The translations under genes and the position numbers were made by a program. A stretch of 64,000 bases of DNA, from NCBI GenBank assembly GCA_002269645.1, contig NIVC01000458.1, positions 124,001 to 188,000 of the forward strand, written 5' to 3'. This DNA comes from Macrostomum lignano. Lineage: Eukaryota. The notes under the pieces were generated by a model. That model had not been told where the DNA came from. It saw nothing but the letters and a program-made list of their open reading frames with translations, and did no database searches. Shown here one piece after another: positions 14,681 to 49,176 of this stretch (position 1 is its first letter; the number at the start of each line of letters is the position of its first letter).

Positions 14681-16390
14681 ATGGACGCCCAGCGCCTACC
14701 TCTGTCCGTGATAGTCAAAGAATCCGTGGCCAATACCACAGCTCACGCCATCGGCCGTGTGGCCCCTGCAAGTCGCGCCATTGTGCTGAGGATCTTTTGG
14801 CTTCTGGCTTTCTTGAGCTTCCTGGGCCTTCTGCTTAACACCTGCACCGTCTACATTCGACGCCTGAACAGTCCGAGCGTAAATTCCGAGTTCCAAGCGG
14901 AAAAGGTTCCATTCGAGTTTCCCGATGTCTACTTTTGCAACAGTCTCCAAGCCGCTGGCTCGTTTATCTACCGACTGAACAGGTCAGAGGCGGACCAGGT
15001 GAACATGCCGTTCTATGCTGCTCAGACTGCATTCGATGCTGCTCTCGGATCTCTGAATGCGTCGGAGAGTGAAAACACAACACTGCGCGAACTTCGGCCA
15101 ACAAGCTTGATCCAGTCTCTGCCCTACAGAACTCTGGCGGACATTGTGGGTCAGTGAAAACTGCAGACATTCTATGGAAACTACGGAATCTTCAGTGCAG
15201 GCTCAGATCGCAGTCTGAATTCTCCGATCGCGGTAGAGACGCTGTTCCACCCGAACCATCTGAAGTGCTTCAAGCTTGCCCTCACCGATGCTGAGTTATC
15301 ACGCATGCAGAATACGAACAACAGATTGCAGCTCGACCTGCTTCTCGATCCTTACTTCTTTGACTTCGATAAGCTTGGCCTGTTTTCAAACCATACAGAC
15401 CGGCTTCCAACAATGTCTGTTTTCGTATCTGGTCAACAGATAACATTATATCCATTCGACTGGAACCTGGAAAATCCGATTGGGTTCGATAAAGGCAGTG
15501 GAATGTATCTCTACCTGACGCCCAGAGGTCACTACCCGTCTCGATTCACCTCTAATGTGATCAGCCTGGGTCCCGGTCGAGCCTACGACGTCTCCATCGC
15601 AATGCAAGATGCCCAGATGACACCGGCGGACTTTCCCGGCCAGTGCGTTGAGAAACACGACGACCCAGTTCTGTTCTTGAACCCGTACAACGGCGCCGCA
15701 GATGCGTTCAGCTACAGCGAGGCTCACTGCTACTATTCGGAGATGGCGAGGGACAGACAGCAGAGGTACAACTGCAGCCCGACACCTGAGCCTACAACCT
15801 GGGAGTTTAGACATCTCCCTCTGTGCCTGAACCTCACAGCGGCTGAAACTGAAGAAGAAATTCATCGAAACATGAAGGCGTCCGTAAAGGCGCGTCTGGA
15901 TGTCAATGGCGGCAACAGCACGTGGTACGACTTGTGCTCCGCGAAGCGACTGTGCAAGCGACGCACTTACTCCGTGACGTCATCTTATGGAATGTGGCCG
16001 AACCAAGCGAGTCTCGTTCGTCTGGTGGATAACGTCATTGGCTCTTTGCTGCAACGTGTTGATCGATAGCAGTTCAGATCACTCGATACGGGTGTTAAAA
16101 CACTGAACTTTTTGTATAGAAGCATTAATTTGGTCCCGTTCGAGACCGGAATAGGGCGCTACTTCCGGCGAGCAGCGGTGAGAGTCACGTTGAGAGCAGA
16201 AGCAACTCGAAGCTCTCTGACAACATTCAGCCTTGACTATCGGCTTGGTCAGTTCATCGCGGACGTTGGCAGCGCACTTGGTTTGTATCTGGGATGTTCG
16301 CTGCTCACCGTGCTGGAGCTGTTTGAACTGTTGCACTACATGCTTATCCGTGCAGCATGCATTGGTCGTCAGCGCAAACGACTGCTATAG
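14681..16390 (+). pseudogene. DEG/ENaC (amiloride-sensitive channel family) copy A, intronless, two in-frame nonsense codons
   Basis: Collinear with the intact 566-aa copy at 44013-45713. TGA at 15155-15157 (AGA in copy B) and TAG at 16067-16069 (TCG in copy B). TM1, FPDVYFCN and TM2 ADVGSALGLYLGCSLLTVLE are retained. Confidence 0.88.
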
Positions 16391-17032
16391 CGCTCTCAAC
16401 AATAGCGGTTTGGCACTATGCATGACGTAGTACAAACTGAACTTTTCTGGAACTGTGGAGTGGTTAGTTAGCTTTATGATGTCTGTTCCAACTGTGTAAA
16501 GAAATTACTTGAAACATAATAAACACTCCATTATTCCTACATTCGGTATGACAAAGTAGCATTAGGTGTGTTGGTTTGTGACTGGTCTTGACTAGTCAAT
16601 AACCAGTTTTAAACCCCTCTTCTCTGCCCGGCCTTGTCGCCTTGCGTACATTCTCTCTCTCCCTCTGTCCGCGCTGTGTGGGGGGTGCTTTGGCTCTGCG
16701 TGCGTAGGGTGGTGGCCTGGTGGGGTGGGCTTTAGCCTCTGCGCCGTTGCCTCTTTTATTGGCGTCTCGCTCAGTTGGCTCAGCGTGTTTGGCTGCCTAC
16801 GTGAGCTCAATTTTTGTTCCAATGTATAAAGAAATTTGAAAAAAAGAGAATTAAAATCATTTTGAATCCCGAAACAATCCCGGGATTTAAGCCTTACAAT
16901 CCCGGGATCCCAATCCCGCACTGTTGTAATCCCGAGGATCATAAATCCCGAAATTTCAAGTCCCAAAAAATCCAGGGATTGAAATCGTGGTCGTGGTGGA
17001 AGCTGGATGCAGCTGTTTCAATACATTTGATA

Positions 17033-17196
17033 TAGGGATCCCGGGATCCCGAGATTTTTTTGAACTTCGAAGCGGGATCCCGGGATTACTCTCAGTCGGT
17101 ATTTTCCGAGATTAGTGATCCCGGGATTTTAACCCATCGGGATTTCAGGATTTCTCAATCCCGGGATTGTAAATTGTCGAGATTTTGGAATCCCTA
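17033..17196. mobile_element. Small hAT-like MITE or element end
   Basis: Termini TAGGGATCCC / GGAATCCCTA and many GGGAT subterminal motifs, as in the 7150-7542 element. No matching 8-bp TSD. Confidence 0.55.
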
Positions 17197-18175
17197 TCCA
17201 TTATTCCTACATTCGGTATGACAAAGTACAAGACGCACATCGCAAATAGCATCAGGCTACCTGTAATGTAGGTATACGAGTAAATCATTCAGACTACCTT
17301 GCGTTGTGAATAGTAGAACTGCAGGAGGGCCGCGGTCACCCTGGCGCTACGCTTTTGGCGACGTCGTCCCAATACCAGCGCTGAGGCAATTCCGCCTATT
17401 CCGCTGACAACTAAGCACATATTCATACAAGCGCGCCAATACTGTACGCAGGCATGTACACTCTCTTGTGCGTTGGGAATTTTTTAGGGCTTTCATTGAT
17501 GTGAATTGCACGACAAACCCCGGCCATTTTTTACAGCACAACACAATAAATCGACCCGGGGTCGTAGCGCAAGAGTCCAACGCGTTTACCGTTGAGCTGC
17601 TCTCCCCTTTCCATTGTCTTTTAGGCAGTAATATTGCAAATAAAATGGAATTTAGCTCAACTTTGGCTCGCCCAAGAAACTAGCTCGTAGACCGCTTCAA
17701 GGTGCTCAGTTGCACAGCCCACCATGCATTCGAAGGCTGGTTACAATTTTAGATAATGCTACGGATGGTATCAATAGCTTAGATAAAAGAAATCGCATTC
17801 CATATATTAAAAATGGTTTGTCGGTATCTAGGTATCTATGTGATCGATTTCAGAAAAATCAAACAATAAAACTACACAGCAAAGAATGAAACCGAACTGT
17901 ACATACCCACCCTATACACTGTTGCTTAATCTGAAAATGGCACGCTGACCGAGACAATCATTTGTTAAATCTCTAAAAAAATCGTCCAGAGAATAAGCAG
18001 AGGCTAGAATGTACTCCAAGGTCCCTTGACTAATTATTTTCCATACCTATTTTAGTGGCGTTTTACAAATTAAACGCTAGTGACCATAGACCAAATGAAA
18101 TGATTATTTACATTGTACAAGACGTTTACATGATCACTGGAGTTAAATTGTTAGAGGCGAAGTTCGCTTGAAAAC

Positions 18176-20038
18176 ATGTCCACGATTTCGCAAGGCCGCG
18201 GCAGGACCAGTATAAGAGCGATTGTGCTCATTCAGTCATGGTACCGCCGGTACAAGGCCCGCCTAGAGGCAAGACGACGGGCAGAATGGAAAATCTACGA
18301 GAAAATCGAGTACGCCAGCGAACGGAACCGAATTCACTTGCAGAACTTCCTTGAAGATTTACTCGAGCTTGGCGCTGAACTTTCCGCCGGAGGAATTGGC
18401 TGTAGCTTTGTTCAACGGCTCCAAGAGTTCAAAAGCGTGTCTATCCAGCCGAAGCAAGATAATATCAATTTGGCAAGTTTTGAAGACTTTGATGTAGAAG
18501 ATTCTTACTCGGGGCCTCGGTTGACCTTCCCTCTGAGCGCCACTCAGGTCCAAACTCTGATAGACCACTTCAGTCAGGGAGGACGGCTGCACGCTCGCTA
18601 CCTCATGCAGCTGCTGCATGAAGTCCTACTGGAACTCAAAACAAGGCCAAACATTTATCGACTCAGCACGAGCATCTCCAAGCAGGTGACGGTGGTCGGA
18701 GACCTGCACGGGCAGCTGGAGGATCTGCTGCTCATTTTCTACAAGAACGGCCTGCCGGACGTCACCAACCCGTACGTGTTCAACGGAGATATCGTCGACC
18801 GTGGCTCAAATTCGGTAGAGGTAGCGCTGCTGCTGTTCGCCTGTCAGCTGGTGTGGCCGACGGCAGTTTTTATCAACCGCGGCAACCATGAAGATGCAAC
18901 CATAAATATAAGGTATGGCTTCACAGACGAAGTTAAGACAAAGTACCAAGACACATTTCCGAAAATCATTGGATTATTTAATGAGGTGTTCTCGTGGCTT
19001 CCCATTGCCACGATGATTGACGGGAGCATCTTTGTAGTTCACGGTGGCATCTCCGACAGTGTGGACCTCGGGCTGCTGGATAAACTTGACAGGCACAAGT
19101 ACTATTCCCTGATTCCTGGTTCTGGAAATAAAGCGGTAAACAAAATGGAACAACAACAGATAATAGACGTTTTGTGGAGTGATCCTCAACCGGAGCTGGG
19201 CTGCCAATTCAACAACGAGCGTAACATTGGATGCTTCTTTGGGCCGGACATCACGGCAAACTTCTTGCAGCGGAACCGATTAAATCTGCTAGTTCGCTCT
19301 CATCAGGTCCCGATTGATGGCTACTGTTATACTCACTGCGAATGTGTGCTGACGATCTTCTCCGCGTCCAACTACCAGTTCGAGGGCAGCAATCCCGGTG
19401 CCTACGTTAAGTTGGACAGCAACGGAAAGCCGGAGATTGTGCAGTTCTGCCCAAACAAGAAAAACCTTAAGCCTCTCGGTCGTCAAATTTTCTGCGCCGA
19501 AGACGCCGCTCTGCGCAGCCTTCGGGCGAAAATCGCCGCAAGTAAGACCGAGCTGGTGGCAGCCTTCAGCAAAATGGATTCCCGAAAGACCGGCTGCGTC
19601 ACCGTCGCCCAGTGGTGCAGCGCGATGGAGTCGGAGCTGAAGTTTGACCTGCCGTGGAGAATGCTGCGGCCTCATCTTGCGGAGTTGACAGCAGACAAAC
19701 GCGTCATGTACATGACGACCTTCCAGAGAGCAACCCTGCAGAATAATATGGAGAACACATTCTTCCCACTGCCAGATGCTTCAGTAATGGAGGCCGTTTA
19801 CAAAAACAAGGAAGAGCTGGAGGCCATTTTCCGCATCATGGACCGCGACAACAGCGGCTACATCAGTCTGGACGAGTTCAAGGAGTGCTGTCGAGTTCTG
19901 GGCCGAGCCACCAAGCGTAACCTGCCTGAAGCCGAGATTGTCGACATGGCCAAAGCGATGGACCTCAACAAGGACGGCAGGATCGACTTTAACGAGTTTC
20001 TCGAGGCCTTTCGAATTGTCGAGTTTAAGAACAAATAA
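18176..20038 (+). CDS. PPEF: Ser/Thr phosphatase with EF-hands (PPEF/rdgC family), copy A, intronless, 620 aa
   Basis: N-terminal IQ motif (IQSWYRRYKAR), PPP motifs GDLHG, GDIVDRG, RGNHE, HGG, RSHQ, SASNY, and EF-hands DRDNSGYISLDE and DLNKDGRIDFNE. Confidence 0.95.
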   Translation: MSTISQGRGRTSIRAIVLIQSWYRRYKARLEARRRAEWKIYEKIEYASERNRIHLQNFLEDLLELGAELSAGGIGCSFVQRLQEFKSVSIQPKQDNINLASFEDFDVEDSYSGPRLTFPLSATQVQTLIDHFSQGGRLHARYLMQLLHEVLLELKTRPNIYRLSTSISKQVTVVGDLHGQLEDLLLIFYKNGLPDVTNPYVFNGDIVDRGSNSVEVALLLFACQLVWPTAVFINRGNHEDATINIRYGFTDEVKTKYQDTFPKIIGLFNEVFSWLPIATMIDGSIFVVHGGISDSVDLGLLDKLDRHKYYSLIPGSGNKAVNKMEQQQIIDVLWSDPQPELGCQFNNERNIGCFFGPDITANFLQRNRLNLLVRSHQVPIDGYCYTHCECVLTIFSASNYQFEGSNPGAYVKLDSNGKPEIVQFCPNKKNLKPLGRQIFCAEDAALRSLRAKIAASKTELVAAFSKMDSRKTGCVTVAQWCSAMESELKFDLPWRMLRPHLAELTADKRVMYMTTFQRATLQNNMENTFFPLPDASVMEAVYKNKEELEAIFRIMDRDNSGYISLDEFKECCRVLGRATKRNLPEAEIVDMAKAMDLNKDGRIDFNEFLEAFRIVEFKNK

Positions 20039-24039: not shown

Positions 24040-25170
24040 CTTGGACAGGCATCCAGTAAGGGGATTTCCCAGCTGAACTCAGGCATCCAGCAAAAGGGAC
24101 TCCCCACCGCACACAAGCATCCAGCAAGGGGATTCCCCATCGCACTAAAGCATCCAGCAAAAGGGATTCCCCACCGCACACAAGCATCCAGCAAGGGGAT
24201 TCCCCACCGCACTTAAGCATCCAACAAGGAGATTCCCCACCGCACACAAGCATCTAGCAAGGGGATTCCCCACCGCACACAAGCATCCAGCAAGTGGATT
24301 CCCCACCGCACCAAGCATCCAGCAAGGGGATTCCCCACCGCACCAAGCATCGAGCAAGGAGATTCCCCACCGCACCAAGCATCGAGCAAGGGGATTCCCC
24401 ACCGCACACAAGCATCGAGCAAGGGGATTCCCCACCGCACTTAAGCATCCAACAAGGAGATTCCCCACCGCACACAAGCATCTAGCAAGGGGATTCCCCA
24501 TCGCACTTAAGCATCCAGCAAGGGGATTCCCCACCGCACCAAGCATCGAGCAAGGGGATTCCCCACCGCACACAAGCATCAAGCAAGGGGATTCTCCACC
24601 GCACCAAGCATCGAGCAAGGGGATTCCCCACCGCACACAAGCATCGAGCAAGGGGATTCCCCACCGCACTTAAGCATCCAACAAGGAGATTCCCCACCGC
24701 ACACAAGCATCTAGCAAGGGGATTCCCCATCGCACTTAAGCATCCAGCAATGGGATTCCCCACCGCACTTAAGCATCCAACAAGGAGATTCCCCACCGCA
24801 CACAAGCATCGAGCAAGGGGATTCCCCACCGCACCAAGCATCGAGCAAGGGGATTCCCACCGCACACAAGCATCGAGCAAGGGGATTCCCCACCGCACTT
24901 AAGCATCCAACAAGGAGATTCCCCACCGCACACAAGCATCTAGCAAGGGGATTCCCCATCGCACTTAAGCATCCAGCAAGGGGATTCCCCACCGCACTTA
25001 AGCATCCAACAAGGAGATTCCCCACCGCACACTAGCATCGAGCAAGGGGATTCCCCACCGCACCAAGCATCGAGCAAGGGGATTCCCACCGCACACAAGC
25101 ATCGAGCAAGGGGATTCTCCACCGCACTTAAGCATACAGCAAACGGATTCCCCACAGAACTTAAGCATAC
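24040..25170. repeat. 32-33 bp minisatellite in MCU intron 3
   Basis: Unit CAAGCATCCAGCAAGGGGATTCCCCACCGCA(CA/CTT), more than 30 copies, with an internal palindrome GGGGA-T-TCCCC. Confidence 0.97.
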
Positions 25171-25574
25171 AGCGAGCTGAAAGTTAGAAAGTACATCGGG
25201 CTTAGCGAGAGAGATAAGGGCCTGGAACATCCGACTCAAGAATTAAGTGGCCGGCATACGTACCGGTATATCAAAGAGCAGAAGAGCAGAGTTCCGAGAC
25301 GAGACGAATCCAGGGGATCTAGCGATGTATAGTAATCCCTAGAGGGGAACGAAATAGATAGAGCCTACTCGTAAGAGGAAGACGAAGATGGAAGCAAGAG
25401 AAATTTTTTATTCCCAAAGAATCAATATCAAGAGAGCCGGACTGCATTATGGCCAGCGAAAAGGGAGTCTTTTACGAGAGTGCGGTGAGAGTTTTGAGAT
25501 AACAGAGATGATGAATTAAGTATCGAGGGCAAGTACGCTCGAAGGAATAGGGTGGATAGGAGATCGAGCGATAG

Positions 25575-26548
25575 CTTAGGGGCTTTAGGGGCGATTCTCA
25601 GTGAGGTTTAGGGGGATTATCAGTGAGGTTTAGGGGCGATTTTCAGTGAGGTTTAGGGGGGATTCTCAGTGAGGTTTAGGGGGATTCTCAGTGAGGTTTA
25701 GGGGGATTATCAGTGAAGTTTAGGGGCGATTCTCAGTGAGGTTTAGGGGGGATTCTCAGTGAGGTTTAGGGGCGATTCTCAGTGAGGTTTAGGGGGGATT
25801 ATCAGTGAAATTTAGGGGCGATTCTCAGTGAGGTTTAGGGGGATTCTCAGTGAGGTTTAGGGGGATTATCAGTGAAGTTTAGGGGCGATTCTCAGTGAGG
25901 TTTAGGGGGATTCTCAGTGAGGTTTAGGGGGATTATCAGTGAGGTTTAGGGGCGATTCTCAGTGAGGTTTAGGGGCGATTCTCTGAGGTTTAGGGGCGAT
26001 TATCAGTGAGGTTTAGGGGCGATTCTCAGTGAGGTTTAGGGGCGATTCTCTGAGGTTTAGGGGCGATTATCAGTGAGGTTTAGGGGCGATTCTCAGTGAG
26101 GTTTAGGGGCGATTCTCTGAGGTTTAGGGGCGATTCACAGTGAGGTTTAGGGGGATTATCAATGAGGTTTAGGGGCGATTCTCAGTGAGGTTTTGGGGCG
26201 ATTCTCAGTGAGATTTAGGGGCGATTCTCAGTGAGGTTTAGGGGCGATTCTCAGTGAGGTTTAGGGGCGATTCTCAGTGAGGTTTAGGGGGATTCTCAGT
26301 GAGGTTTAGGGGCGATTCTCGGTGAGGTTTAGGGCCGTTAGGGGCGATTCTCAGTGAGGTTTAGGGGCGATTCTCAGTGAGGTTTAGGGGCGATTCTCAG
26401 TGAGGTTTAGGGGCGATTCTCAGTGAGGTTTAGGGGCGATTCTCAGTGAAATTTAGGGGGGATTCTCAGTGAGGTTTAGGGGGGATTCTCAGTGAGGTTC
26501 AGGGGCGATTCTCAGTGAGATTTAGGGGCGATTCTCAGTGAGGTTTAG
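25575..26548. repeat. 22-23 bp minisatellite containing TTTAGGG in MCU intron 3
   Basis: Unit GAGGTTTAGGGGCGATTCTCAGT, about 40 copies. Confidence 0.97.
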
Positions 26549-28189: not shown

Positions 28190-28301
<112 letters not shown>

Positions 28302-28373
28302 CTACGAGTTCGAGCTAACTATTGCTAGCTACTCGAATATCTGTTGCCAGCAAAAACTGCGCACGACACACCC

Positions 28374-28760
<387 letters not shown>

Positions 28761-29223
28761 GAACACTAACGCAGACGCAGCAACAGACAGCCAGCTACTA
28801 CGCATATTCATCCGCAGGCAAGCAGTGAAGCGAGTCCGGTGCCGGACAGACAGCCCGGTAACAACTCTAATTAATGTGAAAGCCTGCAGGCCGACTGTGC
28901 AGGGCTTACGAGCTTATTGGCGAAGCAAATCAAAGCTAACCAACATGGAAAGTTTTCTCGTATAGAGAGAGAAAGAGGAAAGTTCCCTCAAACTATCTAG
29001 AGCAGTTACCCACTCAGATCAACTATCGTGGAGTTGAGCTCTCCATAAAGTCAGTCGAATCTCTTAGGAAATTCGAGCAATATCAGGCTTTGGGAAATTT
29101 CCCCGATGACTTGCTAGATCATTCAATCCGTAAAACTAAGAAAATGTGGATACTTTATTAACTTCAGAAACGGTCCAATTCAGTACCAATTTTTCTTGGT
29201 TCTCAGGGGCGCGCTTCACAATA

Positions 29224-29863
29224 TGGGTGACAGGGGGAGCTGAAATGGGTGACAGGGGGAGCTGAAATGGGTGACAGGGGGGAGCTGAAATGGGTGACAG
29301 AGGGAGGTGAAATGGGTGACAGGGGGAGCTGAAATGGGTGACAGGGGGAGCTGAAATGGGTGACGGGGGGCTGAAATGGGTGACAGGGGAGCTGAAATGG
29401 GTGCCGGAGAGGGAGCTGAAATGGGTGACAGGGGGAGCTGAAATGGGTGACAGGGGGGAGCTGAAATGGGTGACAGAGGGAGGTGAAATGGGTGACAGGG
29501 GGAGCTGAAACGGGTGACAGGGGGAGCTGAAATGGGTGACGGGGGGCTGAAATGGGTGACAGGGGAGCTGAAATGGGTGCCGGAGAGGGAGCTGAAATGG
29601 GTGACAGGGGGAGCTGAAATGGGTGACGGGGGGAGCTGAAATGGGTGACAGGGGGGGCTGAAATGGGTGACGGGGGGCTGAAATGGGTGACAGGGGGGGG
29701 GGCTGAAATGGGTGACGGGGGGCTGAAATGGGTGACAGGGGGGGCTGAAATGGGTGACGGGGGGCTGAAATGGGTGACAGGGGTGTGAAATGGGTGACAG
29801 GGGGTGTGAAATGGGTGACGGGGGGCTGAAATGGGTGACAGGGGGTGTGAAATGGGTGACAGG
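29224..29863. repeat. About 22-bp G-rich minisatellite in MCU intron 2
   Basis: Unit GGGTGACAGGGGGAGCTGAAAT with variable G-run length. Confidence 0.97.
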
Positions 29864-29978
29864 GTGCCCAACAACGGTACAACAAAGCCAAAGGCGCACC
29901 TGAAGCGCTCAATGCGCACACGTAGACCCATTAAAAGTGGATGAATGAATATATAAACATTGTGAAACGGCAACTCAC

Positions 29979-30244: not shown

Positions 30245-30289
30245 CTGGTGGGTGTGACCAGGTTGGAATTTGGGGATCATTTGGGATTA

Positions 30290-30900
30290 AGAGTATATGG
30301 GATTTAAGAGGATTATCTGGAATTTTAAAAGATTATTTTTAGGACTTGAGATTATCTGAGATTCGAGAGGATTATTTGGGATTTGAGAGGATTATTTAGG
30401 ATTCGAGAGGATTATTTGGGATTTGAGAGGATTATTTGGGATTTGAGAGGATTATTTGGAATTTGAGAGGATTATTTGGGATTTGAGAGGGTTATTTGGG
30501 ATTTGAGAGGACTATTTGAGATTTGAGAGGATTATTTAGGATTTGAGAGGATTATTTGGGATTTGAGAGGATTATTTGGGATTTGAGAGGATTATTTGGG
30601 ATTTGAGAGGATTATTTGGGATTTGAGAGGACTATTTGAAATTTGAGAGGATTATTTAGGATTTGAGAGGATTATTTGGGATTTGAGAGGACTATTTGAA
30701 ATTTGAGATGATTATTTAGGATTTAAGAGGATTATTTGGGATTTGAGAGGATTATTTGGGATTTGAGAGGATTATTTGGGATTTGAGAGGACTATTTGGG
30801 ATTTGAGAGGATTATTTGGGATTTGAGAGGGTTATTTGGGATTTGAGAGGATTATTTGGGATTTGAGAGGATTATTTAGGATTTGAGAGGATTATTTAGG
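30290..30900. repeat. 20-bp minisatellite next to the MCU exon 2 acceptor
   Basis: Unit GATTTGAGAGGATTATTTGG, about 30 copies. Confidence 0.97.
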
Positions 30901-32595: not shown

Positions 32596-33363
32596 CTCTC
32601 CCAGCAAAGAAAGATTCTACATGTAACTAAGCCCCCTGATGCCGTACGACAATTGATAGTACAGTACTTTTGCATGCTCGCGGTTGGCTTCACGCATTCG
32701 CTGTAATTCACCAATGGCAGTTGGTTGATAATTCTGTCTATAGTACTCGTATATTTATAAGTCTAGATACATGTAGCTACTATCTAGACACGGGCAGAGC
32801 GCCATACCACAGGCAAGGTTTGAAGCGTGGCTGGAGAAAAACACACACACGCGTTCTTTTCTTTCTTTCCATTAGTTACAGGCATATACGAGGCTTAAAG
32901 CACAGCAGGCTTTGAGTAGAATGGACAATGAATCTCTATGGACGTGTGGGCAGTCGCACAAATTCAGCAGAGCATTAGAGTGAGTCTTTGAGTTGAATTA
33001 ACGATAAATATATATGTAGTGAGACAGAAACCCCCCCTCTCTCCTGCCTAACCGTCAGTCATTCACTTTTCTTCGCTTGAACTGTACAGTGCCAGTGTTC
33101 TAAAGAAATTGGGGCGCCATTATTTCGTATCTGACTCACCTTAGCTTGACGGAGTGTGTGTGTGCGCGCGTGTGTGTAGAGCATCGAGCATTGAGCTCTG
33201 CACTCAGGCAAATCTAAATAAAGACTTCAAGAAAAATATATACAGTATTTTTTATTTAATAAACTCGTTAAGAATGAGAACGGTTTTATCTGCCTAGAGT
33301 GTCATTTGCTGCAGACCTAAAAACCGACTAACATTAAAGTGTGTCCAAGATTACCTCCTACAG

Positions 33364-33628: not shown

Positions 33629-34299
33629 CCTACAGAAACCGGTTGCACAGTTCATCTTAGTCTCTACTTAGTTCCGTCTATTACTAAGCTAATCCTAGCA
33701 TATCTTAAGATGATTTCTAAGAAATTAACACCTTCCCATAGTAATTATGGTTCTCCTCGACCAGTAGTTGCAATAAAATCCCTTTACAGTACAGTAAGAC
33801 TTTACTTAGAAGCTTTTATACAACACGCACAATTAACATCAACGCTCTATCCGCATACTACGCTCGTAGTAAGACTATTCATCGTTCATCTAGAGAGAGA
33901 ATCTGTGCAACACAGGATGCACTTTAAATTGAAGGCTGAAGCCGTGAGGGGAAGAGAAAGGCTACGCAAAAAGTTTTAGACTGGCCAGACCGCTCGATGG
34001 TTGGCTGGAAGAGTCAACGTGTGTCGCTTGAAGAAAACCGAAAGAGGATGACCGGTTTAAAGTTTCACCACAGGTTCTGCATACCACCTCTTCTCTTACA
34101 AAGATTTTACAGACTCTCTTAGATACAGGTCTTACAATCAGGGTGTCCGCGCAATTTTCATTTTAGATTTCCAGGTTTTAAGTTAATTAACTTTTCGTTT
34201 TAGGTCGAATTTCAGTTGAAATTTTAACAGAAATTAGAAAAGTAAGAATATACTAAAACTTTCCCATGACCCAAAATTTGAAAATTGAAAACTATTGCT

Positions 34300-34900
34300 G
34301 TTCCACATCCCATAATCCCCATCGTGTATTTCAGCTGCACCGCTGCTGTCCCACACCCCATAATCCCCATAGTGTATTTCAGCTGCACTGCTGCTGTCCC
34401 ACATGCCATAATCCCCATCGTGTATTTCAGCTGCACTGCTGCTGTCCCACATGCCATAATCCCCATCGTGTATTTCAGCTGCACTGCTGCTGTCCCACAT
34501 GCCATAATCCCCATCGTGTATTTCAGCTGCACTGCTGCTGTCCCACATCCCATAATCCCCATCGTGTATTTCAGCTGCACTGCTGCTGTCCCACATCCCA
34601 TAATCCCCATCGTGTATTTCAGCTGCACTGCTGCTGTCCCACATGCCATAATCCCCATCGTGTATTTCAGCTGCACTGCTGCTGTCCCACATGCCATAAT
34701 CCCCATCGTGTATTTCAGCTGCACTGCTGCTGTCCCACATGCCATAATCCCCATCGTGTATTTCAGCTGCACTGCTGCTGTCCCACATGCCATAATCCCC
34801 ATCGTGTATTTCAGCTGCACCGCTGCTGTCCCACACCCCATAACCCCCATCCCCATGCTGTCACACACCCCACACCCCATAATCCCCATCGTGTACGCTC
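34300..34900. repeat. 48-bp minisatellite in MCU intron 1
   Basis: Unit CCATAATCCCCATCGTGTATTTCAGCTGCACTGCTGCTGTCCCACATG, about 11 copies. Confidence 0.97.
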
Positions 34901-35779
34901 GTATTTCAGCTACACAGCTGCTGTCCGACATAACGCAGTATGTTCAACGGCCCCATCATAAAATACAAAATATGAATAAAGAAAACAGTTGCTGTATCAA
35001 TCAGTACAACAGACTAATTAATTTTATTATTTTTTAAGAAAAAAGTTTGTGAGTAGCAACACTCAAAGTGCTTCCAGTCGCGCCCTGCAACAGTCATCGA
35101 TCAAATATGTCAGCCACAGCGAGACCGCCGTTTTTTTTACAAGATAAGCCAAGCCTCAGTCCCTTCAGAGCTACAGCGAATATAGGCAAGAAAAGCGGCG
35201 AGAAAAGGCGAGAAGAAATCGGGTTAGCCAAGAGCAAACTAGACGGAGACAGGTCCAGCAAGACACTGCTCAAGCGAGTCCAATAATAAAGTCAATAAAT
35301 TGGACTCTTCGGATCAAAGGCTTGAGGATTTAGCAGGACGGAATTGACTTTGTTAATCTCATTAAATAAGAGTGCACCGGTACTGCCCGAGTTCGTGTCA
35401 TTTCGCCTCTTTTTTTTTACTCCTTTCATGCGGTGGCCAATCGATCCAGATAGATTGACGGCTGGCTACTACTAGACTGTGTTTGGTTACCCGACAAAAA
35501 AGCAGATAGCAGTTTTACCAAACAAGCGGAGCTATAGGCATATAGACATGTACATGTGCCGTGGGTGATTCTAAATAGAGTTTTAGGAAGGACTCATTTT
35601 ATCATAAGCATTACAACAGATGCCATCGTGACTGAATTATATTTTATAAATATTATTTCCATGCTTCAAAATGCATGCTAATCATCGTTTTTATGGTGAA
35701 CTTGGGGTAAAGAATAAAATGCGTAAAAATTGTTTGTGGTGGGGAGTCAGTTCGTAGCTGATGGCGAATCAAAGATGGC

Positions 35780-36598
35780 TGATAGGGAATCAGAGGCACT
35801 GATGGGGAATCAGAGGTACTGATGGGGAATCAGAGGCACTGATGGGGAATCAGAGGCACTGATGGGGAATCAGAGGCACTGATGGGGAATCAAAGAGGCA
35901 GCTGATGGGGAATCAAAGAGGCAGCTGATGGGGAATCAAAGAGGCAGCTGATGGGGAATCAAAGAGGCAGCTGATGGGGAGTCAAAGAGACAGCTGATGA
36001 GGAATAAAGGCAGCTGATGAGGAATCAAAGACAGCTGATGAGGAATCAAAGAGACAGCTGATGAGGAATCAAAGAGACAGCTGATGAGGAATCAAAGAGA
36101 GCTGATGGGGAATCAAAGAGACGGCTGATGGGGAATCAAAGAGAGCTGATGGGGAATCAAAGAGACAGCTGATGAGGAATCAAAGACAGCTGATGAGGAA
36201 TCAAAGACAGCTGATGAGGAATCAAAGAGACAGCTGATGAGGAATCAAAGAGACGGCTGATGGGGAATCAAAGAGACGGCTGATGGGGAATCAAAGAGAG
36301 CTGATGGGGAATCAAAGAGACAGCTGATGAGGAATCAAAGAGACGGCTGATGGGGAATCAAAGACAGCTGATGAGGAATCAAAGACAGCTGATGAGGAAT
36401 CAAAGAGACAACTGATGAGGAATCAAAGAGAGCTGATGGGGAATCAAAGAGACGGCTGATGGGGAATCAAAGACAGCTGATGAGGAATCAAAGACAGCTG
36501 ATGAGGAATCAAAGAGACAACTGATGAGGAATCAAAGAGAGCTGATGGGGAATCAAAGAGAGCTGATGGGGAATCAAAGAGACGGCTGATGGGGAATC
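35780..36598. repeat. 19-23 bp minisatellite next to the MCU exon 1 donor
   Basis: Unit GCTGATG(A/G)GGAATCAAAGA(GA)(CA). Confidence 0.96.
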
Positions 36599-38401: not shown

Positions 38402-38762
38402 CTTTTTTCATTAGAGGCAGGGGGGTTATGTGCACCCTGGTGCACTTTAAGCGACATAGGCATACAACTGGCAAAAGGCATTGCTGCCCATTCCACCGAC
38501 TCCCCAAGTAGGCAAACAAACGCGTAGATACATACGTAGGCACACACTCACATAGGAGTGTACAGCAGCCCTAACTTTATATTATCATTAGGCATATACA
38601 TTTCATTGCACCTTAGGGGTTTGGCTCTCAAGGCTGTTAATTGAATGAGCAGAGCCAAGCCAAGATTCCAATTCAGCCCCAAATTAATGTGACTGCACTT
38701 GGAATCGAGCCTGGGTTACTGGCACACTAGAGCCTGCACTAGACTGCTAGGCTACGGCCCCC
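38402..38762 (-). mobile_element. tRNA-derived SINE, copy 1 (heavily C-to-T mutated)
   Basis: Aligns end to end with the copy at 46686-47042, with tRNA-like head and A-rich tail. Confidence 0.85.
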
Positions 38763-41675: not shown

Positions 41676-41763
41676 GCTAATAGTTACATTTTACCAGAAA
41701 ATATTAAACAAGAATACATGCGGACAAAGCCTTATATTCATCTTCTCTTGTATACATACATAT

Positions 41764-43598
41764 TGTAGACATTGGATTTAGAAGTTATATATAGGATGTT
41801 ACTTTTCTTCGTAAATTGTTATTTTAACACAAATTAAGTTGATGTAGACTAAGGCAGAGAGATACGACTGAGAGTTGACGAAGCCTCTTGGCGTTTATTA
41901 GATCGATACGCAGGTTAAATACGATACAACGATTGTTACATAACTGGTTATAAAAGATAGAGACAGGGGTGGGTGAAAAGCACGTACATGTTGTACAATA
42001 GCAACCCCCACCCCGCTCTAGCGACTGGCGCATACAAGTACACTTGCAACTCACTACAATCCTCCCCGGCGAAAAAGATCAATAACATTCAAACGAATAA
42101 TTCGAAGGAAACATAAGAACAGTAAAACATTCGAAACAATATTGGTATAAAGAATTTCTCGCTTTCAAATAATTCGCAACAGTCAGTAGAACAGTCACTG
42201 AGTCAATCAAAAATTCAACCGGCCACATAGCGATCCACCAGCATCCGCCTACGCATCGGGTAGCGTCTCGGGGGCAGCTCCTCGTCCGCCTCATCGCCGC
42301 CGTGCGCCGCGTGCGCAAAGGGCGGCTGCAGGAAGCGCTCTCCGTCAGGGACTGGCAGGATCCGCGGCCGCAGACGATTCACATTCACCCTGCGGGTCCG
42401 GCCGTTCTCGATCTTTCGAATTTCGACTACCAGATCCCGCTGCGACAGCACCTGCCAGCCCGGCTCCCAGTACGGCGCCAGCTTGGAGCCCCTCAGCTCG
42501 ATGCGCAGCAGAACCTCGTCTCCAGGACTGAACGTGCGCAGCTGCCCGGTCGACCTGTCGTAGCCGCTCTTTTGCTCGCCAGCCGCCTGCACCAGATGCT
42601 CCTCGACAAACTCTCGAATTCGCAGCAGGTCGCCCTCGAGCTTGTCGGCGTAGGTGCGCACGTCATAGAATCGCCTGGACTGCTGGCTGATGACCGGCAG
42701 GCTCGGATCGCGCCCGGTGAACACCTTCAGTGGCGGCAGCTGTGTTGAGCAGTGCACCCGGGAATTGTAGGACAGCAGGATCAGTGGCAGCTTGTCCTCC
42801 CACTCGCTCTCTCGCTCGGTGAAACACCTGAGTAACTGCAGCACTGACTTGTTGCCTGACTCTGCTAATCCGTTGCCTTTGGGATTGTAAGCCGTTGTTC
42901 TTGTCTTCGTGACTCCCAGGCCTCGCAGAGTGTCTTGAAAAAGCTGAGACTCGAAACTCGGTCCTTGATCGGAGTGGATGACTCGGGGAAGTCCAGTCTG
43001 GGAGCAGATGGAGAGGAAGGCGCGAGCAGTAGTCTCAGCAGTCTGGTCAGGAATCGCCACGGCCGTCAGGTACTTGGAAAACTGATCCTGAGCCACCAGC
43101 AGGTATTTGTTGCCGCGCGATGATGGCGCCACCTTGACGATGTCGATAGCCACAGAATCCCACGGCGAGCCGATTGGCAGTTCTCCGAGTGGCGCGCTGG
43201 TCCGCGAGCCCGCTTTCTTCTCCTGACAGACAGAACAACTCTGGCAGTGTTGCACGATGTCTTCAGCCATTCCGGGCCAGTAGGCGGTCAGTTTCAGTGT
43301 GCGGTAGCATTTCTCGGCTCCGAAATGACCTCCCAGACCTTCGTGAGCGTTGGTCAAAAACTGTTGTCGAAGCCGCGCTGGCACCACTGGAACCTCCCGC
43401 AGGCCGTCCGGGTCATTGAACTTGCGCAGTAGAACACCGTCATCATCCAGCTTCAGCTTCTTCCAGATTCTGCCGAGTTGCTGCAGTGGTCCTGCTCGCC
43501 ATCTGGGTGCAATTTCTGCGTCTTTGTCCATCGCCTGAATCACCTGGCTGAGCTCCGGGTCATGTCGCTGCGCAGTTTTGAGCTCTTCAGTGTCGATT
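41764..43598 (-). mobile_element. 5'-truncated Gypsy/Ty3 LTR retrotransposon: integrase plus PPT plus 3' LTR
   Basis: ORF 42215-43543 has an HHCC zinc finger (AHEGLGGH...CQSCSVC) and an rve core (VAIDIV, HSDQGPSFES, GNGLAES). PPT GGGGAGGA is followed by the LTR start TGTAG at 42058. The LTR carries AATAAA and ends at CTACA (41764, alternatively 41843). No RT or gag present. Confidence 0.92.
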
Positions 43599-44012: not shown

Positions 44013-45713
44013 TCAATTCGACGCCGGCCTGCAGCAGACAGCAAAAAGAAGCACATTGTGCAGCAGCTCGAACAGCTCCAACACGGTGAGCAGCGAACAT
44101 CCCAGATACAAACCAAGTGCGCTGCCAACGTCCGCGATGAACTGACCAAGCCGATAGTCAAGGCTGAATGTTGTCAGAGAGCTTCGACTTGCTTCTGCTC
44201 TCAACGTGACTCTCACCGCTGCTCGCCGGAAGTAGCGCAACGCTCCGTCTTCGAAGTCAATAAGACGCACTGATTTATCGATAAACTGCAATGTTCCAAC
44301 ACCCGTCTCGAGTGATCTGAACTGCGATCGATCAACACGTTGCAGCAAAGAGCCAATGACGTTATCCACCAGACGAACGAGACTCGCTTGGTTCGGCCAC
44401 ATTCCATAAGATGACGTCACGGAGTAAGTGCGTCGCTTGCACAGTCGCTTCGCGGAGCACAAGTCGTACCACGTGCTGTTGCCGCCATTGACATCCACAC
44501 GCGCTTTTACGGACGCCTTCATGTTTCGATGAATTGCTTCTTCAGTTTCAGCCGCTGTGAGGTTCAGGCACAGAGGGAGATGTCTAAACTCCCAGGTTGT
44601 AGGCTCAGGTGTCGGGCTGCAGTTGTACCTCTGCTGTCTGTCCCTCGCCATCTCCGAATAGTAGCAGTGAGCCTCGCTGTAGCTGAACGCATCTGCGGCA
44701 CCGTTGTACGGGTTCAAGAACAGAACTGGGTCGTCGTGTTTCTCAACGCACTGGCCGGGAAAGTCCGCCGGTGTCATCTGGGCATCTTGCATTGCGATGG
44801 AGACGTCGTAGGCTCGACCGGGACCCAGGCTGATCACATTAGAGGTGAATCGAGACGGGTAGTGACCTCTGGGCGTCAGGTAGAGATACATTCCGCTGCC
44901 TTTATCGAACCCGATCGGATTCTCCAGGTTCCAGTCGAATGGATATAATGTTATCTGATGACCAGATACGACAACAGACATTGTTGGAAGCCGGTCTGTA
45001 TGGTTTGAAAACAGGCCAAGCTTATCGAAGTCAAAGAAGTAAGGATCGAGAAGCAGGTCGAGCTGCAATCTGTTGTTCGTATTCTGCATCCGAGATAACT
45101 CAGCATCGGTGAGGGCAAGCTTGAAGCACTTCAGATGGTTCGGGTGGAACAGCGTCTCTACCGCGATCGGGGAATTCAGACTGCGATCTGAGCCTGCACT
45201 GAAGATTCCGTAGTTTCCGTAGAATGTCTGCAGCTTTCTCTGACCCACAATGTCCGCCAGAGTTCTGTAGGGCAGAGACTGGATCAAGCTTGTTGGCCGA
45301 AGTTCGCACAGTGTTGTGTTTTCACTCTCCGACGCATTCAGAGATCGTAGAGCGGCATCGAATGCAGTCTGAGCAGCATAGAACGGCATGTTCACCTGGT
45401 CCGCCTCTGATCTGTTCAGTCGGTAGATAAACGAGCCAGCGGCTTGGAGACTGTTGCAAAAGTAGACATCGGGAAACTCGAATGGAACCTTTTCCGCTTT
45501 GAACTCGGACCTTACGCTCGGACTGTTCAGGCGTCGAATGTAGACGGTGCAGGTGTTAAGCAGAAGGCCCAGGAAGCTCAAGAATGCCAGAAGCCAGAAG
45601 ATCCTCAGTACAATGACGCGACTTGCAGGGGCCACACGGCCGATGGCGTGAGCTGTGGTATTGGCCACGGATTCTTTGACTATCACGGACAGAGGTAGGC
45701 GCTGGGCGTCCAT
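44013..45713 (-). CDS. DEG/ENaC family channel subunit, copy B, intact and intronless, 566 aa
   Basis: N-terminal NTTAHAIGRV, TM1 IFWLLAFLSFLGLLL, FPDVYFCN, Cys-containing ectodomain, TM2 QFIADVGSALGLYLGCSLLTVLELFE with a GxS filter. Confidence 0.93.
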   Translation of the reverse strand: MDAQRLPLSVIVKESVANTTAHAIGRVAPASRVIVLRIFWLLAFLSFLGLLLNTCTVYIRRLNSPSVRSEFKAEKVPFEFPDVYFCNSLQAAGSFIYRLNRSEADQVNMPFYAAQTAFDAALRSLNASESENTTLCELRPTSLIQSLPYRTLADIVGQRKLQTFYGNYGIFSAGSDRSLNSPIAVETLFHPNHLKCFKLALTDAELSRMQNTNNRLQLDLLLDPYFFDFDKLGLFSNHTDRLPTMSVVVSGHQITLYPFDWNLENPIGFDKGSGMYLYLTPRGHYPSRFTSNVISLGPGRAYDVSIAMQDAQMTPADFPGQCVEKHDDPVLFLNPYNGAADAFSYSEAHCYYSEMARDRQQRYNCSPTPEPTTWEFRHLPLCLNLTAAETEEAIHRNMKASVKARVDVNGGNSTWYDLCSAKRLCKRRTYSVTSSYGMWPNQASLVRLVDNVIGSLLQRVDRSQFRSLETGVGTLQFIDKSVRLIDFEDGALRYFRRAAVRVTLRAEASRSSLTTFSLDYRLGQFIADVGSALGLYLGCSLLTVLELFELLHNVLLFAVCCRPASN

Positions 45714-46685
45714 TCCCCGGCAGTTTCTTGGCGACTTAGAGACTTGGCGACTGACTGCTGTGCAGTTATACTCAACTCAATAGAGAGGCAATCAAGGAAA
45801 TGAATCGATCTGTACCGGCTCAATCATTCCAATCAGAAAGCTCCAAGTGCACCTATTTACTTTGGTAACAAATGGAAGTTTTTGACCAATATAAAGCATA
45901 TATGACTTCCACCTCGCTCTCGTTGCTTAGGGCAACACAGCTTTTGGCCCTTCCAATTAACCAAGCAGTTCAGCGACAGTTATAACTGACGAGAATTGCC
46001 TTGCATTGTTTGTGCAGCTCAGTTAAACAGAGCGTGCATTGGTTAGCTAATGCTTTACGGTGTGTATTGTTTGATGAGTGGCCTAGGCTAATAACCTGCC
46101 GTGCTAAGCAACTCTATACCTGCCCCAACTGCAGCAGACAGGATCACATGCTTGGCAAAATAATTTCAATTCTGTTTGTTCAGGGGCCAATGCCAAATTT
46201 TCAATTATGGAACATGCATTTTAACCATGATTCTTAGTTGCCTTCCTTCGCATTTCATTTGTTTGATTTGAGAAACAGCTGAAGGTTTATGTGATTAGAC
46301 GTTTGTGCTTCCTCCATCTTCCTAGTTTTTGCTGCCCATAGATGCTTGGGATATTTTTATGGACATGAAATGCTGGTTAGGGGAAATGGCTATCTTTATA
46401 GTGCATTTGGTTCAGGAAACTGGCCCTTACATGGCTCCATAGAAGAAAACTCTAGAATACGATTAGTAAACCAAAAATTCAAATTGGCTAATTGTTACTT
46501 GCGGAGTTCACTAACGCTTACACCTCACCATTGAGCATTAGTGAACAGTCATGAATGAGCCCTCATTGTGCAATCACGGAGATGCACTACATCGATTTTT
46601 TGCAGTTTTCAAACTTCACAGAACGGATTGTCAACCAACGCAATCTCGAACCCCTCAGCCCACTGCAATAAGCGATGCGTTGCTT

Positions 46686-47042
46686 TTTTATTAGAGGCAG
46701 GAGGGTTGTGTGCACCCTGGCGCACTTTACGCGACATAGGCACACAACCGGCGAGAGGCATTACTGCCTATTCCGCCGACTCCCCTGAGCAGGCATACAA
46801 GCGCGCGGATACGTACGCAGGCACACACTCACACAGGAGTGTACAGCGGCCCTAACTTTATATTATCGTTAGGCATGTACACTTCACTGCGCCTTGGGGG
46901 GTTGGCTCTCAAGGCTGTTAATTGCACGAGCAGAGCCAAGCCGAGATTCCAATTCAGCCCCAAATTAATGGGACTGCACTTGGAATCGAGCCTGGGTCGC
47001 TGGCACACCAGAGCAGCTGCGCTACCGCTGGGCTACGGCCCC
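46686..47042 (-). mobile_element. tRNA-derived SINE, copy 2 (best preserved)
   Basis: Head GGGGCCGTAGCCCAGCGG (A box) ... GGCTCGATTCC (B box), A-rich tail, 13-bp TSD CGATGCGTTGCTT (46673-46685, 47043-47055). Confidence 0.92.
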
Positions 47043-47304
47043 CGATGCGTTGCTTAATACACGCATATTCTTGTATGCAGAGGAAAAGCTACCCTTTCAA
47101 TCCAACCAATCTGCATCTAGCAAATAGCAAAGAACCATAAAATCCAACGAAAAATGTCTTGGTAAATACTTCAGAGACGATGAATGCACCGACACTTGTT
47201 ATCTCAAACCGAAATCGCACACAGGGACACATGGGTAGCAACATCGTTTATGAAACTTAAATTGCGGATTATAGAAAGTCCAACTTTAACAACTGCACCA
47301 TGAC

Positions 47305-49176
47305 TTAATTGCTCTTAAACTCGACAATTCGAAAGGCCTCGAGAAACTCGTTGAAGTCGATCCTGCCGTCCTTGTTGAGGTCCATCGCTTTGGCCATGTC
47401 GACAATCTCGGCTTCAGGCAGGTTACGCTTGGTGGCTCGGCCCAGAACTCGGCAGCACTCCTTGAACTCGTCCAGACTGATGTAGCCGCTGTTGTCGCGG
47501 TCCATGATGCGGAAGATGGTCTCCAGCTCTTCCTTGTTTTTGTAAACGGCCTCCATCACTGAAAAATCTGGCAACGGGAAGAATGTGTTTTCCATACTGT
47601 TCTGCAAGGTTGCTCTCTGGAAGGTCGTCATGTACATGACGCGTTTGTTCGCAGTAAGCTCTGTCAGATGAGGCCGCAACATTCTCCACGGCAGATTGAA
47701 CTTCAGCACCGACTCCATCGCGCTGCACCACTGGGCGACGGTGACGCAGCCGGTCTTGCGGGAATCCATTTTGCTGAAGGCTGCCACCAGCTCGGTCTTG
47801 CTTGCGGCGATTTTCGCCCGAAGGCTGCGCAGAGCGGCGTCTTCGGCGCAGAAAATTTGACGACCGAGAGGCTTAATGTTTTTTTTGTTTGGGCAGAACC
47901 GCACAATCTCCGGCTTTCCGTTGCTGTCGAACTTGACGTAGGCACCGGGATTGCTGCCCTCGAACTGATAGTTGGACGCGGAGAAGATCGTCAGCACACA
48001 TTCGCAGTGAGTATAACAGTATCCATCAATTGGATCCTGGTGAGAGCGAACTAGCAGCTTGAATCGGTTCCGCTGCAAGAAGTTTGCCGTGATGTCCGGT
48101 CCAAAGAGGCAGCCTTTGCCGCGGCTGCTGATTTGGGATCCGTGCTGCCCGTGAGGATCGCTCCACAACAAGTCTCCCACTTGTTCCCATTCCATTTTAT
48201 CAATATTTCCATTTTTTGAGTTTGAAAAAAGCGAATAGTACTTGTGCCTGTCAAGTTTATCTAGCAGCTCGAGGTCCAGGTTTTCCGAGATGCCACCGTG
48301 AACTACAAAGATGCTCTCATCAATAATTGTGGCAAGCGGAAGCCATGAAAACACTTCGTTAAATAGATCGACGACTTTGTGTGATAGTAAATTGTACTTT
48401 TTGTGAATCTCTTTGTTGAAGCCGTATTTCTGGTTAATAATGGGGTCTTCATGGTTGCCGCGGTTGATAAAAACCGCCGTCGGCCACACCAGCTGACAGG
48501 CGAACAGCAGCAGCGCTACCTCTACCGAATTTGAGCCACGGTCGACGATGTCTCCGTTGAACACGTACGGGTTGGTGACGTCCGGCAGGCCGTTCTTGTA
48601 GAAAATGAGCAGCAGATCCTCCAGCTGCCCGTGCAGGTCTCCGACCACCGTCACCTGCTTGGAGATGCTCGTGCTGAGTCGATAAATGTTTGGCCTTGTC
48701 TTGAGTTCCAGTCGGACTTCATGCAGCAGCTGCATGACATAGCGAGCGTGCAGCCGTCCTCCCTGACTGAAGTGGTCTATCAGAGTTTGGACCTGAGTGG
48801 CGCTCAGAGGGAAGGTCAACCGAGGCCCCGAGTAGGACGTTTCGACGGCGATATCTTCAAAATTTGTCCAACTAGGTAGTTCTCGCTCCTGCCGGTTGGC
48901 GCTCGACTCAATCTCTTGAAGACGCTGAGCAAAACTGCGATCAGCTCCTCCTCCGGACAGTTCGGAGCCAACGTTGAGTACGTCATTGAAAAAGTTTTGC
49001 AAATTAATGCGATTATTCTCACTGGAGTACTCGATGTTTTGGTGGATTCTCCAGGCTACGCGTTTTCTGGCCTCAAGGCGGGCCCTGTATCGGCGGTACC
49101 ATTTCTGTATCGACACAATGGCCTTAATCTTGACTTCACCACCACTGCTCATTAATTTTGTAGTAGCTGTAGCCAT
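47305..49176 (-). CDS. PPEF: PPEF/rdgC family phosphatase, copy B, intronless (about 623 aa from the first ATG)
   Basis: Same IQ, PPP and EF-hand motifs as copy A. The track ORF starts at a TTG (49329); the first ATG is MATATT at 49176. Confidence 0.95.
   Translation of the reverse strand: MATATTKLMSSGGEVKIKAIVSIQKWYRRYRARLEARKRVAWRIHQNIEYSSENNRINLQNFFNDVLNVGSELSGGGADRSFAQRLQEIESSANRQERELPSWTNFEDIAVETSYSGPRLTFPLSATQVQTLIDHFSQGGRLHARYVMQLLHEVRLELKTRPNIYRLSTSISKQVTVVGDLHGQLEDLLLIFYKNGLPDVTNPYVFNGDIVDRGSNSVEVALLLFACQLVWPTAVFINRGNHEDPIINQKYGFNKEIHKKYNLLSHKVVDLFNEVFSWLPLATIIDESIFVVHGGISENLDLELLDKLDRHKYYSLFSNSKNGNIDKMEWEQVGDLLWSDPHGQHGSQISSRGKGCLFGPDITANFLQRNRFKLLVRSHQDPIDGYCYTHCECVLTIFSASNYQFEGSNPGAYVKFDSNGKPEIVRFCPNKKNIKPLGRQIFCAEDAALRSLRAKIAASKTELVAAFSKMDSRKTGCVTVAQWCSAMESVLKFNLPWRMLRPHLTELTANKRVMYMTTFQRATLQNSMENTFFPLPDFSVMEAVYKNKEELETIFRIMDRDNSGYISLDEFKECCRVLGRATKRNLPEAEIVDMAKAMDLNKDGRIDFNEFLEAFRIVEFKSN

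Follow-up and report, generated by a model that had tools for sequence, protein, structure and literature searches.

Organisation of the locus

The stretch of DNA analysed here (the window; 64,000 nt of contig NIVC01000458.1) comes from the free-living flatworm Macrostomum lignano (assembly Mlig_3_7, GCA_002269645.1) and contains two neighbouring pairs of a DEG/ENaC-family channel frame and a PPEF/rdgC-type phosphatase gene, referred to below as ENaC A, PPEF A, ENaC B and PPEF B. M. lignano is a neopolyploid with spliced-leader (SL) trans-splicing, and its assembly holds numerous redundant contigs (PMC10733133; PMC8629364). The exact 620-aa product of PPEF A is deposited on two contigs of this assembly, NIVC01000042.1 and NIVC01000458.1, the first of which is 100% identical to window positions 8176-30038. 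The four frames are located as follows:

14681-16393, + strand: ENaC A, a pseudogene of the DEG/ENaC family on the window contig, its 570 codons including two in-frame stops
18176-20038, + strand: PPEF A, an intact single-exon PPEF/rdgC-type phosphatase of 620 aa with an IQ motif, a PPP catalytic domain and C-terminal EF-hands
44013-45713, - strand: ENaC B, an intact single-exon DEG/ENaC-family gene of 566 aa, very divergent
47305-49176, - strand: PPEF B, an intact PPEF-type phosphatase with a single exon, 623 aa long from the ATG at 49176

The spacer from ENaC A to PPEF A measures 1,782 nt and that between ENaC B and PPEF B 1,591 nt. Copies A and B lie 27 kb apart in opposite orientation, and the transcription order of copy B is PPEF B followed by ENaC B. 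This layout, which is seen directly, agrees in coordinates and strands with the original prediction that ENaC and PPEF frames occur twice, about 1.8 and 1.6 kb apart and with swapped order; the topology that it had deduced (ENaC+ PPEF+ ... ENaC- PPEF-) indeed differs from the ENaC+ PPEF+ ... PPEF- ENaC- that a single inverted duplication would give. Its wording that the pair is present twice applies to the layout and not to working genes on the window contig, since ENaC A is a pseudogene.

Comparison of the window with itself returned only two matches between the A and B copies, 14629-16345 with 45770-44049 (95.7% identity) and 18213-20038 with 49126-47305 (86.9%). Similarity is therefore limited to the coding sequences (CDSs) and 52 nt 5′ of the ENaC ATG, where CDSs plus about 60 nt had been predicted. 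None of the four frames requires an intron, single open reading frames (ORFs) spanning the whole proteins, and splicing is annotated in the neighbouring genes for WSC (151 aa from 849 nt) and MCU (328 aa from more than 7 kb), so that the contrast drawn earlier between intronless pairs and spliced neighbours was correct.

The phosphatase and channel families

Pfam searches placed the frames in the families that had been named for them, with the domains PPP5-linker, Metallophos (E ~1e-28), EF-hand_1 and EF-hand_7 (E 1e-18 to 1e-20) in both phosphatases and ASC in ENaC B. The IQ motif was matched in PPEF A (E 2.8e-4), and PPEF B has the same IQxWYRRY sequence. In both proteins the catalytic motifs GDLHG, GDIVDRG, RGNHE and HGG and the two C-terminal EF-hands are intact, and proteins named PPEF1, PPEF2, pef-1 or rdgC, from cnidarians to vertebrates, align with them at 42-48% identity over 97-100% of the query; for PPEF A, alignments with PPEFs of other animals take in 98-99% of its length. 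PPEF A and PPEF B thus carry all three hallmarks of PPEF/rdgC proteins: the catalytic motifs, an EF-hand pair with an IQ motif, and full-length similarity. An exact look-up of PPEF B, taken from the ATG at 49176, found no identical gene on record. The deposited PPEF B model (P0003; 578 aa, 1,754 nt; L005 10001-11754) follows the genomic ORF for its first 504 aa and continues after residue 504 in another frame, 17 nt short of colinearity, which suggests either that the transcript came from an allele with a small deletion or that the model contains a mini-intron introduced as an artefact.

One or two PPEF genes are found in most animals. In M. lignano we counted at least seven paralogues, four of which form a single-exon subfamily. 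Besides PPEF A and PPEF B, this subfamily comprises C1 (631 aa; 10001-11896) and C2 (~686 aa; ~15520-17583), which are arranged in tandem on NIVC01000493.1 (L003; coordinates of the fetched piece); C2 begins with MGCGQS and had no called gene model in the look-up. The other paralogues, P0004-P0006, are UniRef entries with 53-57% identity. An N-terminal MGCG acylation motif is present in C2, in P0004 and in the outgroup protein P0007 and is absent from PPEF A and PPEF B. In a neighbour-joining tree the M. lignano PPEFs were together monophyletic (100%) and had a parasitic flatworm PPEF as their sister (99%); among them A, B, C1 and C2 formed a subclade (97%) separate from the three longer paralogues. 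The expectation that PPEF genes are normally multi-exon held in the two outgroups that were checked, where the gene for a 674-aa protein spans 22.3 kb (Owenia) and that for a 669-aa protein spans 12.7 kb (Nematostella).

Family membership of the channel frame was settled, as far as protein comparison goes, by Pfam and by sequence matches to proteins in the PDB. ENaC B gave a full-length ASC match (PF00858, E 1.6e-31; residues 17-550 on profile positions 3-455 of 455). Its sequence matches to solved ASIC1 chains were confined to the regions of the first and second transmembrane segments (TM1 and TM2), and the TM2 stretch LGLYLGCSLLTVLE, with a G-x-S filter, aligned with ASIC1. This selectivity-filter motif corresponds to G538-C-S540 of ENaC B, and G538 and S540 are invariant in comparison with the M. 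lignano paralogues. The His-Gly gating motif that precedes TM1 is altered: at residues 20-26 (window 14738-14758 in A and 45656-45636 in B), ENaC A, ENaC B and a third copy, A4, read AHAIGR, with the His kept and the Gly replaced by Ala, where the M. lignano paralogues have AHGIxR and ASIC1 has LHGIS.

Relatives of ENaC B are few. A word-indexed protein search with ENaC B alone or with a 7-sequence alignment gave no relatives, whereas an exhaustive search of 1.84 billion representative proteins recovered 138 at E<=1e-3. The named ones are M. lignano paralogues with 25-30% identity, and a single unnamed partial Logan product of 381 aa, from a short contig, is 54% identical. By these comparisons, ENaC B is assigned to a small, very divergent and lineage-specific DEG/ENaC clade.

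ENaC A and ENaC B proteins are 94.6% identical. The frame of ENaC A is interrupted by TGA at 15155-15157 (AGA in B) and by TAG at 16067-16069 (TCG in B), and both stops are common to NIVC01000042.1 and to the near-identical, separately assembled NIVC01000458.1. Since they are substitutions and occur on two contigs, they are real and not indel-type read errors. Copy A4, which is ~97% identical and lies on NIVC01001313.1, has neither stop and encodes an intact protein of 570 aa, so that both stops are private to A in the comparison with A4 and B. On the window contig ENaC A is thus a young pseudogene, next to a PPEF A that is intact and annotated. An exact look-up of ENaC B gave no recorded gene; gene models are deposited for both PPEFs and for neither ENaC frame. 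The ratio dN/dS was 0.44 for ENaC and 0.15-0.25 for PPEF, and ENaC B, PPEF A and PPEF B are under purifying selection.

Divergence between the copies, spacers and neighbourhoods

Overall synonymous divergence between A and B differs between the two genes (dS 0.09 for ENaC and 0.36 for PPEF), and the PPEF value is an average over two very different kinds of sequence. In blocks of 60 nt, identity between PPEF A and PPEF B alternates between 0.52-0.78 and 0.92-1.00. The low blocks pooled gave dS 1.43 and dN 0.35, comparable with the dS of 1.51 found both between A and C1 and between C1 and C2. The high blocks pooled gave dS 0.126, and the same blocks compared with C1 or C2 gave dS 0.87-1.0. Because identity in the high blocks extends to synonymous sites, at which C1 and C2 are diverged, constraint at the nucleotide level does not explain it. 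The longest identical run between PPEF A and PPEF B is 149 nt, compared with a maximum of 75 in 2,000 shuffles. The candidate conversion tracts, and one island that would have escaped conversion, are:

14629-16096, + strand, paired with B 45770-44298: ENaC tract 1, ~98% identity, including 52 nt 5′ of the ATG
16097-16155, + strand, paired with B 44297-44239: unconverted ENaC island, 31 differences in 59 nt, no indel, both copies in frame
18506-18895, + strand, paired with B ~48833-48444: PPEF tract 1, 93-100% identity
19250-20030, + strand, paired with B ~48093-47313: PPEF tract 2, 85-100% identity

In ENaC, 31 of the 49 differences private to B fall inside the 59-nt island and 7 more in the last 33 nt of the match; beyond its end the C-terminal tails of A and B diverge, with homology still recognisable. 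Outside the island and the 3′ tail the three copies are about equidistant, with 19 private differences in A, 14 in A4 and 11 in B, and the homeologs A and A4 differ by a dS of 0.04-0.08. Blocks of sharply contrasting dS within one and the same paralogue pair, the signature sought for interlocus gene conversion, are thus present. The simplest reading is that A and B stem from an ancient duplication, after which interlocus gene conversion acted on the inverted paralogues. Such a history would by itself leave similarity limited to the CDSs with a 52-nt overhang, with no need for gene-sized or retroposed moves. Independent gene-sized moves, one of the two options that had been offered, do not fit a PPEF pair in which unconverted blocks at dS 1.43 stand beside recent tracts at 0.13, the corresponding value for ENaC being 0.09.

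The spacers contain repeats that bear on their length, and a further element adjoins ENaC B:

16527-17228, no strand: A-spacer insertion of 638 nt with many ATCCCGGGAT palindromes, bounded by a perfect 32-nt direct repeat (16527-16558 and 17197-17228)
46683-47043, no strand: SINE-like dispersed repeat of ~360 nt with a tRNA-like head, in the B spacer
42215-43543, - strand: intact solo retrotransposon-type integrase ORF of 442 aa with an H2C2 zinc-binding region and an rve core, 470 nt 3′ of ENaC B

The A-spacer insertion resembles a foldback or MITE-like element with an unusually long duplication. Other copies of the SINE-like repeat are found at 38402-38762 and 60758-60968 and, degraded, in the A spacer at 17321-17513, the copies being 81-88% identical. 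The copies in the two spacers share their absolute orientation, which means that they are not part of the duplication and look like independent insertions. ARAGORN and Rfam searches over the window called nothing, including no tRNA gene in the SINE-like repeat. Subtraction of the insertion (~670 nt) and of the SINE remnant (~200-280 nt) reduces the A spacer to ~0.8-0.9 kb, and the B spacer without its 361-nt SINE-like copy measures ~1.2 kb. The homeologous A spacer on NIVC01001313.1 (L004 6386-8904) has an extra insertion of ~2.5 kb, so that ENaC A4 lies 4 kb from PPEF A4.

The integrase ORF lies outside the duplicated sequence, and its protein is 100% identical on the homeologous contig. No reverse transcriptase ORF and no LTR-like direct repeat was found in its surroundings, and the ORF could belong to a 5′-truncated element or represent a domesticated integrase. 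Minisatellite arrays with periods of ~20-48 nt and lengths of up to at least 1 kb pack the window and are the source of most of its long spurious ORFs (255-921, 1619-2458, 9277-10711, 24045-25173, 25584-26548, 28373-28794, 29223-29864, 30263-30901, 31954-32604, 34296-34851, 35737-36598, 52765-56205, 58901-59374 and 62345-62642). A direct repeat of 319 nt with 100% identity (11034-11352 and 12225-12543, ~1.2 kb apart) lies 5′ of the WSC-domain gene.

Sequence signals were then considered for the transcription of the pairs. In M. lignano, operons were called with a threshold of 1 kb after repeat subtraction, have a spacer mode of ~100 bp and take in 15% of genes; the acceptor motif YTNCAG was found at 9,551 of 21,754 known acceptor sites, ~44% (PMC8629364). 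An AATAAA or ATTAAA signal follows the stop codon by 125-265 nt in three of the four frames. The only YTNCAG match upstream of PPEF A is at -322, and none occurs within 400 nt 5′ of the ENaC B ATG. Both deposited PPEF models are transcript-derived. These signals point to separate transcription units, and to weak or restricted expression of the ENaC genes, and are no proof of either.

We also looked at whether channel and phosphatase genes adjoin elsewhere. The fetched 21.9 kb that include C1 and C2 (with 10 kb 5′ of C1 and 4.3 kb 3′ of C2) gave no ENaC-like match when searched with ENaC B and eight divergent M. lignano ENaC paralogues, and no ASC neighbour lies within 10 kb of PPEF in Owenia or Nematostella. 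The original prediction had named adjacency in other paralogues as its test; with the closest PPEFs unlinked to ENaC, the outcome goes part of the way towards contradicting it.

History of the locus and comparison with known systems

Taken together, the data make it quite probable that the two pairs arose by an old local duplication, followed by rearrangement, gene conversion and pseudogenisation of ENaC A, with the genes most likely transcribed separately. The ancestral state would have been a neighbour pair of one lineage-specific divergent DEG/ENaC member and one lineage-specific single-exon PPEF member. This pair would have duplicated long ago and been rearranged in more than one step, which would have left the copies far apart, in opposite orientation and with swapped order; a saturated dS implies time enough for several rearrangement steps. 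One possible path leads through a tandem array of ~2.5 units, inversion of a PPEF-ENaC unit and loss of one copy. The ancestral PPEF-ENaC array that had been suggested is kept here as such a path, although no further ENaC or PPEF relics that could mark it were found by tblastn (E<=10) across the window. Non-coding sequence would meanwhile have diverged past recognition. Much later, at about the time when the homeologous copies separated, interlocus conversion would have covered nearly the whole of ENaC and roughly two thirds of PPEF. Afterwards ENaC A would have gained its two nonsense mutations in the lineage of the window contig, a decay as expected of a redundant copy in a polyploid, and each gene most likely forms its own transcription unit. 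We infer this order of events, more than one rearrangement step and independent transcription.

For the loss of introns, one old event followed by DNA-level duplication within the PPEF A/B/C subfamily would suffice, most simply by retroposition. The PPEF genes lack introns where their relatives in Owenia and Nematostella have them, as expected of retrogenes. No poly(A) remnant or target-site duplication was found after the four stop codons or around the copies, and erasure of such traces is expected at this age. A retro-origin of the single-exon PPEF subfamily is plausible, if unproven, and would be a single old event rather than the cause of the arrangement. The retro-derivation put forward earlier thus retains its plausibility for this subfamily and is not supported as the cause of the CDS-limited similarity or of the layout.

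Several points weigh against this history. The path to the swapped order named above is only one possibility, and the same-strand adjacency that both pairs have kept over a long time could reflect selection. The age of the ENaC duplication depends on one 59-nt island and on the divergent C-terminal tail, and a recent 1.7-kb ENaC duplication in which one patch came from a third paralogue could account for the same pattern. Independent transcription is read from sequence only: the repeat-adjusted A spacer is below the 1-kb operon threshold used for M. lignano, and, as YTNCAG marks under half of the known sites, its absence is weak evidence. Finally, within M. lignano the linkage check covers only the neighbourhood of the PPEF paralogues C1 and C2.

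Two other explanations concern how the layout came about. Recent gene-sized moves, either retroposed mRNAs or small separate duplications of CDSs, would make the CDS limits true duplication boundaries. They would fit four frames without introns, a similarity that stops within tens of nucleotides of the coding sequences, an integrase ORF adjoining ENaC B and an ENaC A/B dS of only 0.09. However, saturated (dS 1.43) and near-identical PPEF blocks are interleaved, which is impossible from a single recent copy, and ENaC has both an in-frame island with 31 of 59 positions differing and a diverged homologous C-terminal tail. Neither copy is flanked by a poly(A) remnant or a target-site duplication, and two independent landings at 1.6-1.8 kb from the partner would be an unlikely coincidence; we regard such moves as improbable. 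An artefact of assembling a repeat-rich polyploid genome deserves mention since redundant contigs are numerous in the PacBio-based Mlig_3_7 (PMC8629364) and the window is full of minisatellites, yet it is hardly credible here. The A side recurs on two further contigs. The B side recurs on one, with PPEF B, ENaC B and the integrase in unchanged order and each of the three proteins 100% identical to that of the window; moreover, A and B differ by hundreds of substitutions and hence are not collapsed or duplicated reads.

What the adjacency might mean for function is a separate matter. DEG/ENaC and PPEF families are both known from sensory cells in other animals. In a functional module, the same sensory cells would use both the channel and the Ca2+-regulated PPEF, the phosphatase would regulate the channel or its pathway, and selection for co-regulation would keep the genes adjacent, possibly as an SL-resolved operon or through shared enhancers. 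In its favour are the same-strand adjacency at 1.6-1.8 kb in both old copies (4 kb on the homeolog), the A spacer of less than 1 kb after repeat adjustment, and the purifying selection on PPEF A, PPEF B and ENaC B, together with the share of M. lignano genes assigned to operons, 15%, and the inflation of operon spacers by repeats (PMC8629364). However, since both pairs would descend from one ancestral neighbour pair, the adjacency amounts to a single observation and is no evidence of a functional module. Gene order differs between the copies, leaving no conserved upstream/downstream relation; the nearest PPEF paralogues have no ENaC neighbour, and PPEF is not beside ASC in Owenia or Nematostella. 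ENaC A is dead next to an intact and annotated PPEF A, deposited models exist for both PPEFs and for neither ENaC, the downstream gene has no acceptor motif nearby, and poly(A) signals are found 3′ of the upstream ENaC A. Our literature searches found no link between PPEF and ENaC. The co-transcribed or functional module that had been proposed is unsupported by spacer length, poly(A) signals, acceptor motif and the absence of ENaC from the C1/C2 neighbourhood, and we consider it unlikely. A stronger version would make the pair a Macrostomum-specific sensory cassette, undescribed in any animal, in which the Ca2+-activated phosphatase tunes or ends the channel response, linkage is selected for shared regulation and gene conversion keeps the sequences synchronised; this seems very unlikely to us.

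Under the history of old duplication and conversion, the locus is a case of ordinary lineage-specific gene-family expansion, and its striking layout would be explained by known processes. The analysis is mainly a correction: the layout would result from old local duplication and gene conversion in a polyploid genome, with one copy decaying. As we read the mosaic, it documents that inverted M. lignano paralogues at a distance of 27 kb have undergone interlocus gene conversion. It also reveals a flatworm-specific PPEF expansion (at least seven paralogues, four of them single-exon) and draws attention to a DEG/ENaC clade that is unannotated, highly divergent and altered in its HG motif. If ENaC and PPEF were co-expressed, there would be a testable link from a Ca2+-dependent phosphatase to a DEG/ENaC channel.

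Among known systems, the phosphatases are closest to PPEF/rdgC/PEF-1 proteins, with which PPEF A and PPEF B share the IQ motif, the PPP core and the two C-terminal EF-hands; they differ in being single-exon, in lacking MGCG and in belonging to an expansion to at least seven paralogues. ENaC B resembles DEG/ENaC channels (ASIC, FaNaC, ENaC) in its full-length ASC match, its TM1 and TM2 aligned to ASIC1 and its G-x-S filter, whereas its ectodomain is extremely divergent and the motif ahead of TM1 reads H-A in place of HG. Like the genes of M. lignano SL operons, ENaC and PPEF are same-strand neighbours; unlike them, they are separated by 1.6-1.8 kb, show no nearby YTNCAG, and in pair A have a pseudogene as the upstream gene. 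Flatworm USP genes without introns have been proposed to be retrogenes that were then duplicated at the DNA level (PMC5793430), and in our literature searches no statement on intronless M. lignano genes went beyond this USP family. The single-exon PPEFs resemble them in forming one clade inside an otherwise multi-exon family and in occurring in local clusters; they differ in that for PPEF neither the structure of a parent gene nor a poly(A) remnant or target-site duplication was seen. Interlocus gene conversion and concerted evolution are described for globin genes and for sex-chromosome palindromes. Compared with these, conversion at the present locus would differ in homogenising only coding sequences, not whole arms, and ENaC and PPEF to different extents; the likeness lies in the mosaic of near-identical and anciently diverged blocks, in the homogenised synonymous sites, and in tracts that stop near the limits of retained homology, which here are the coding sequences.

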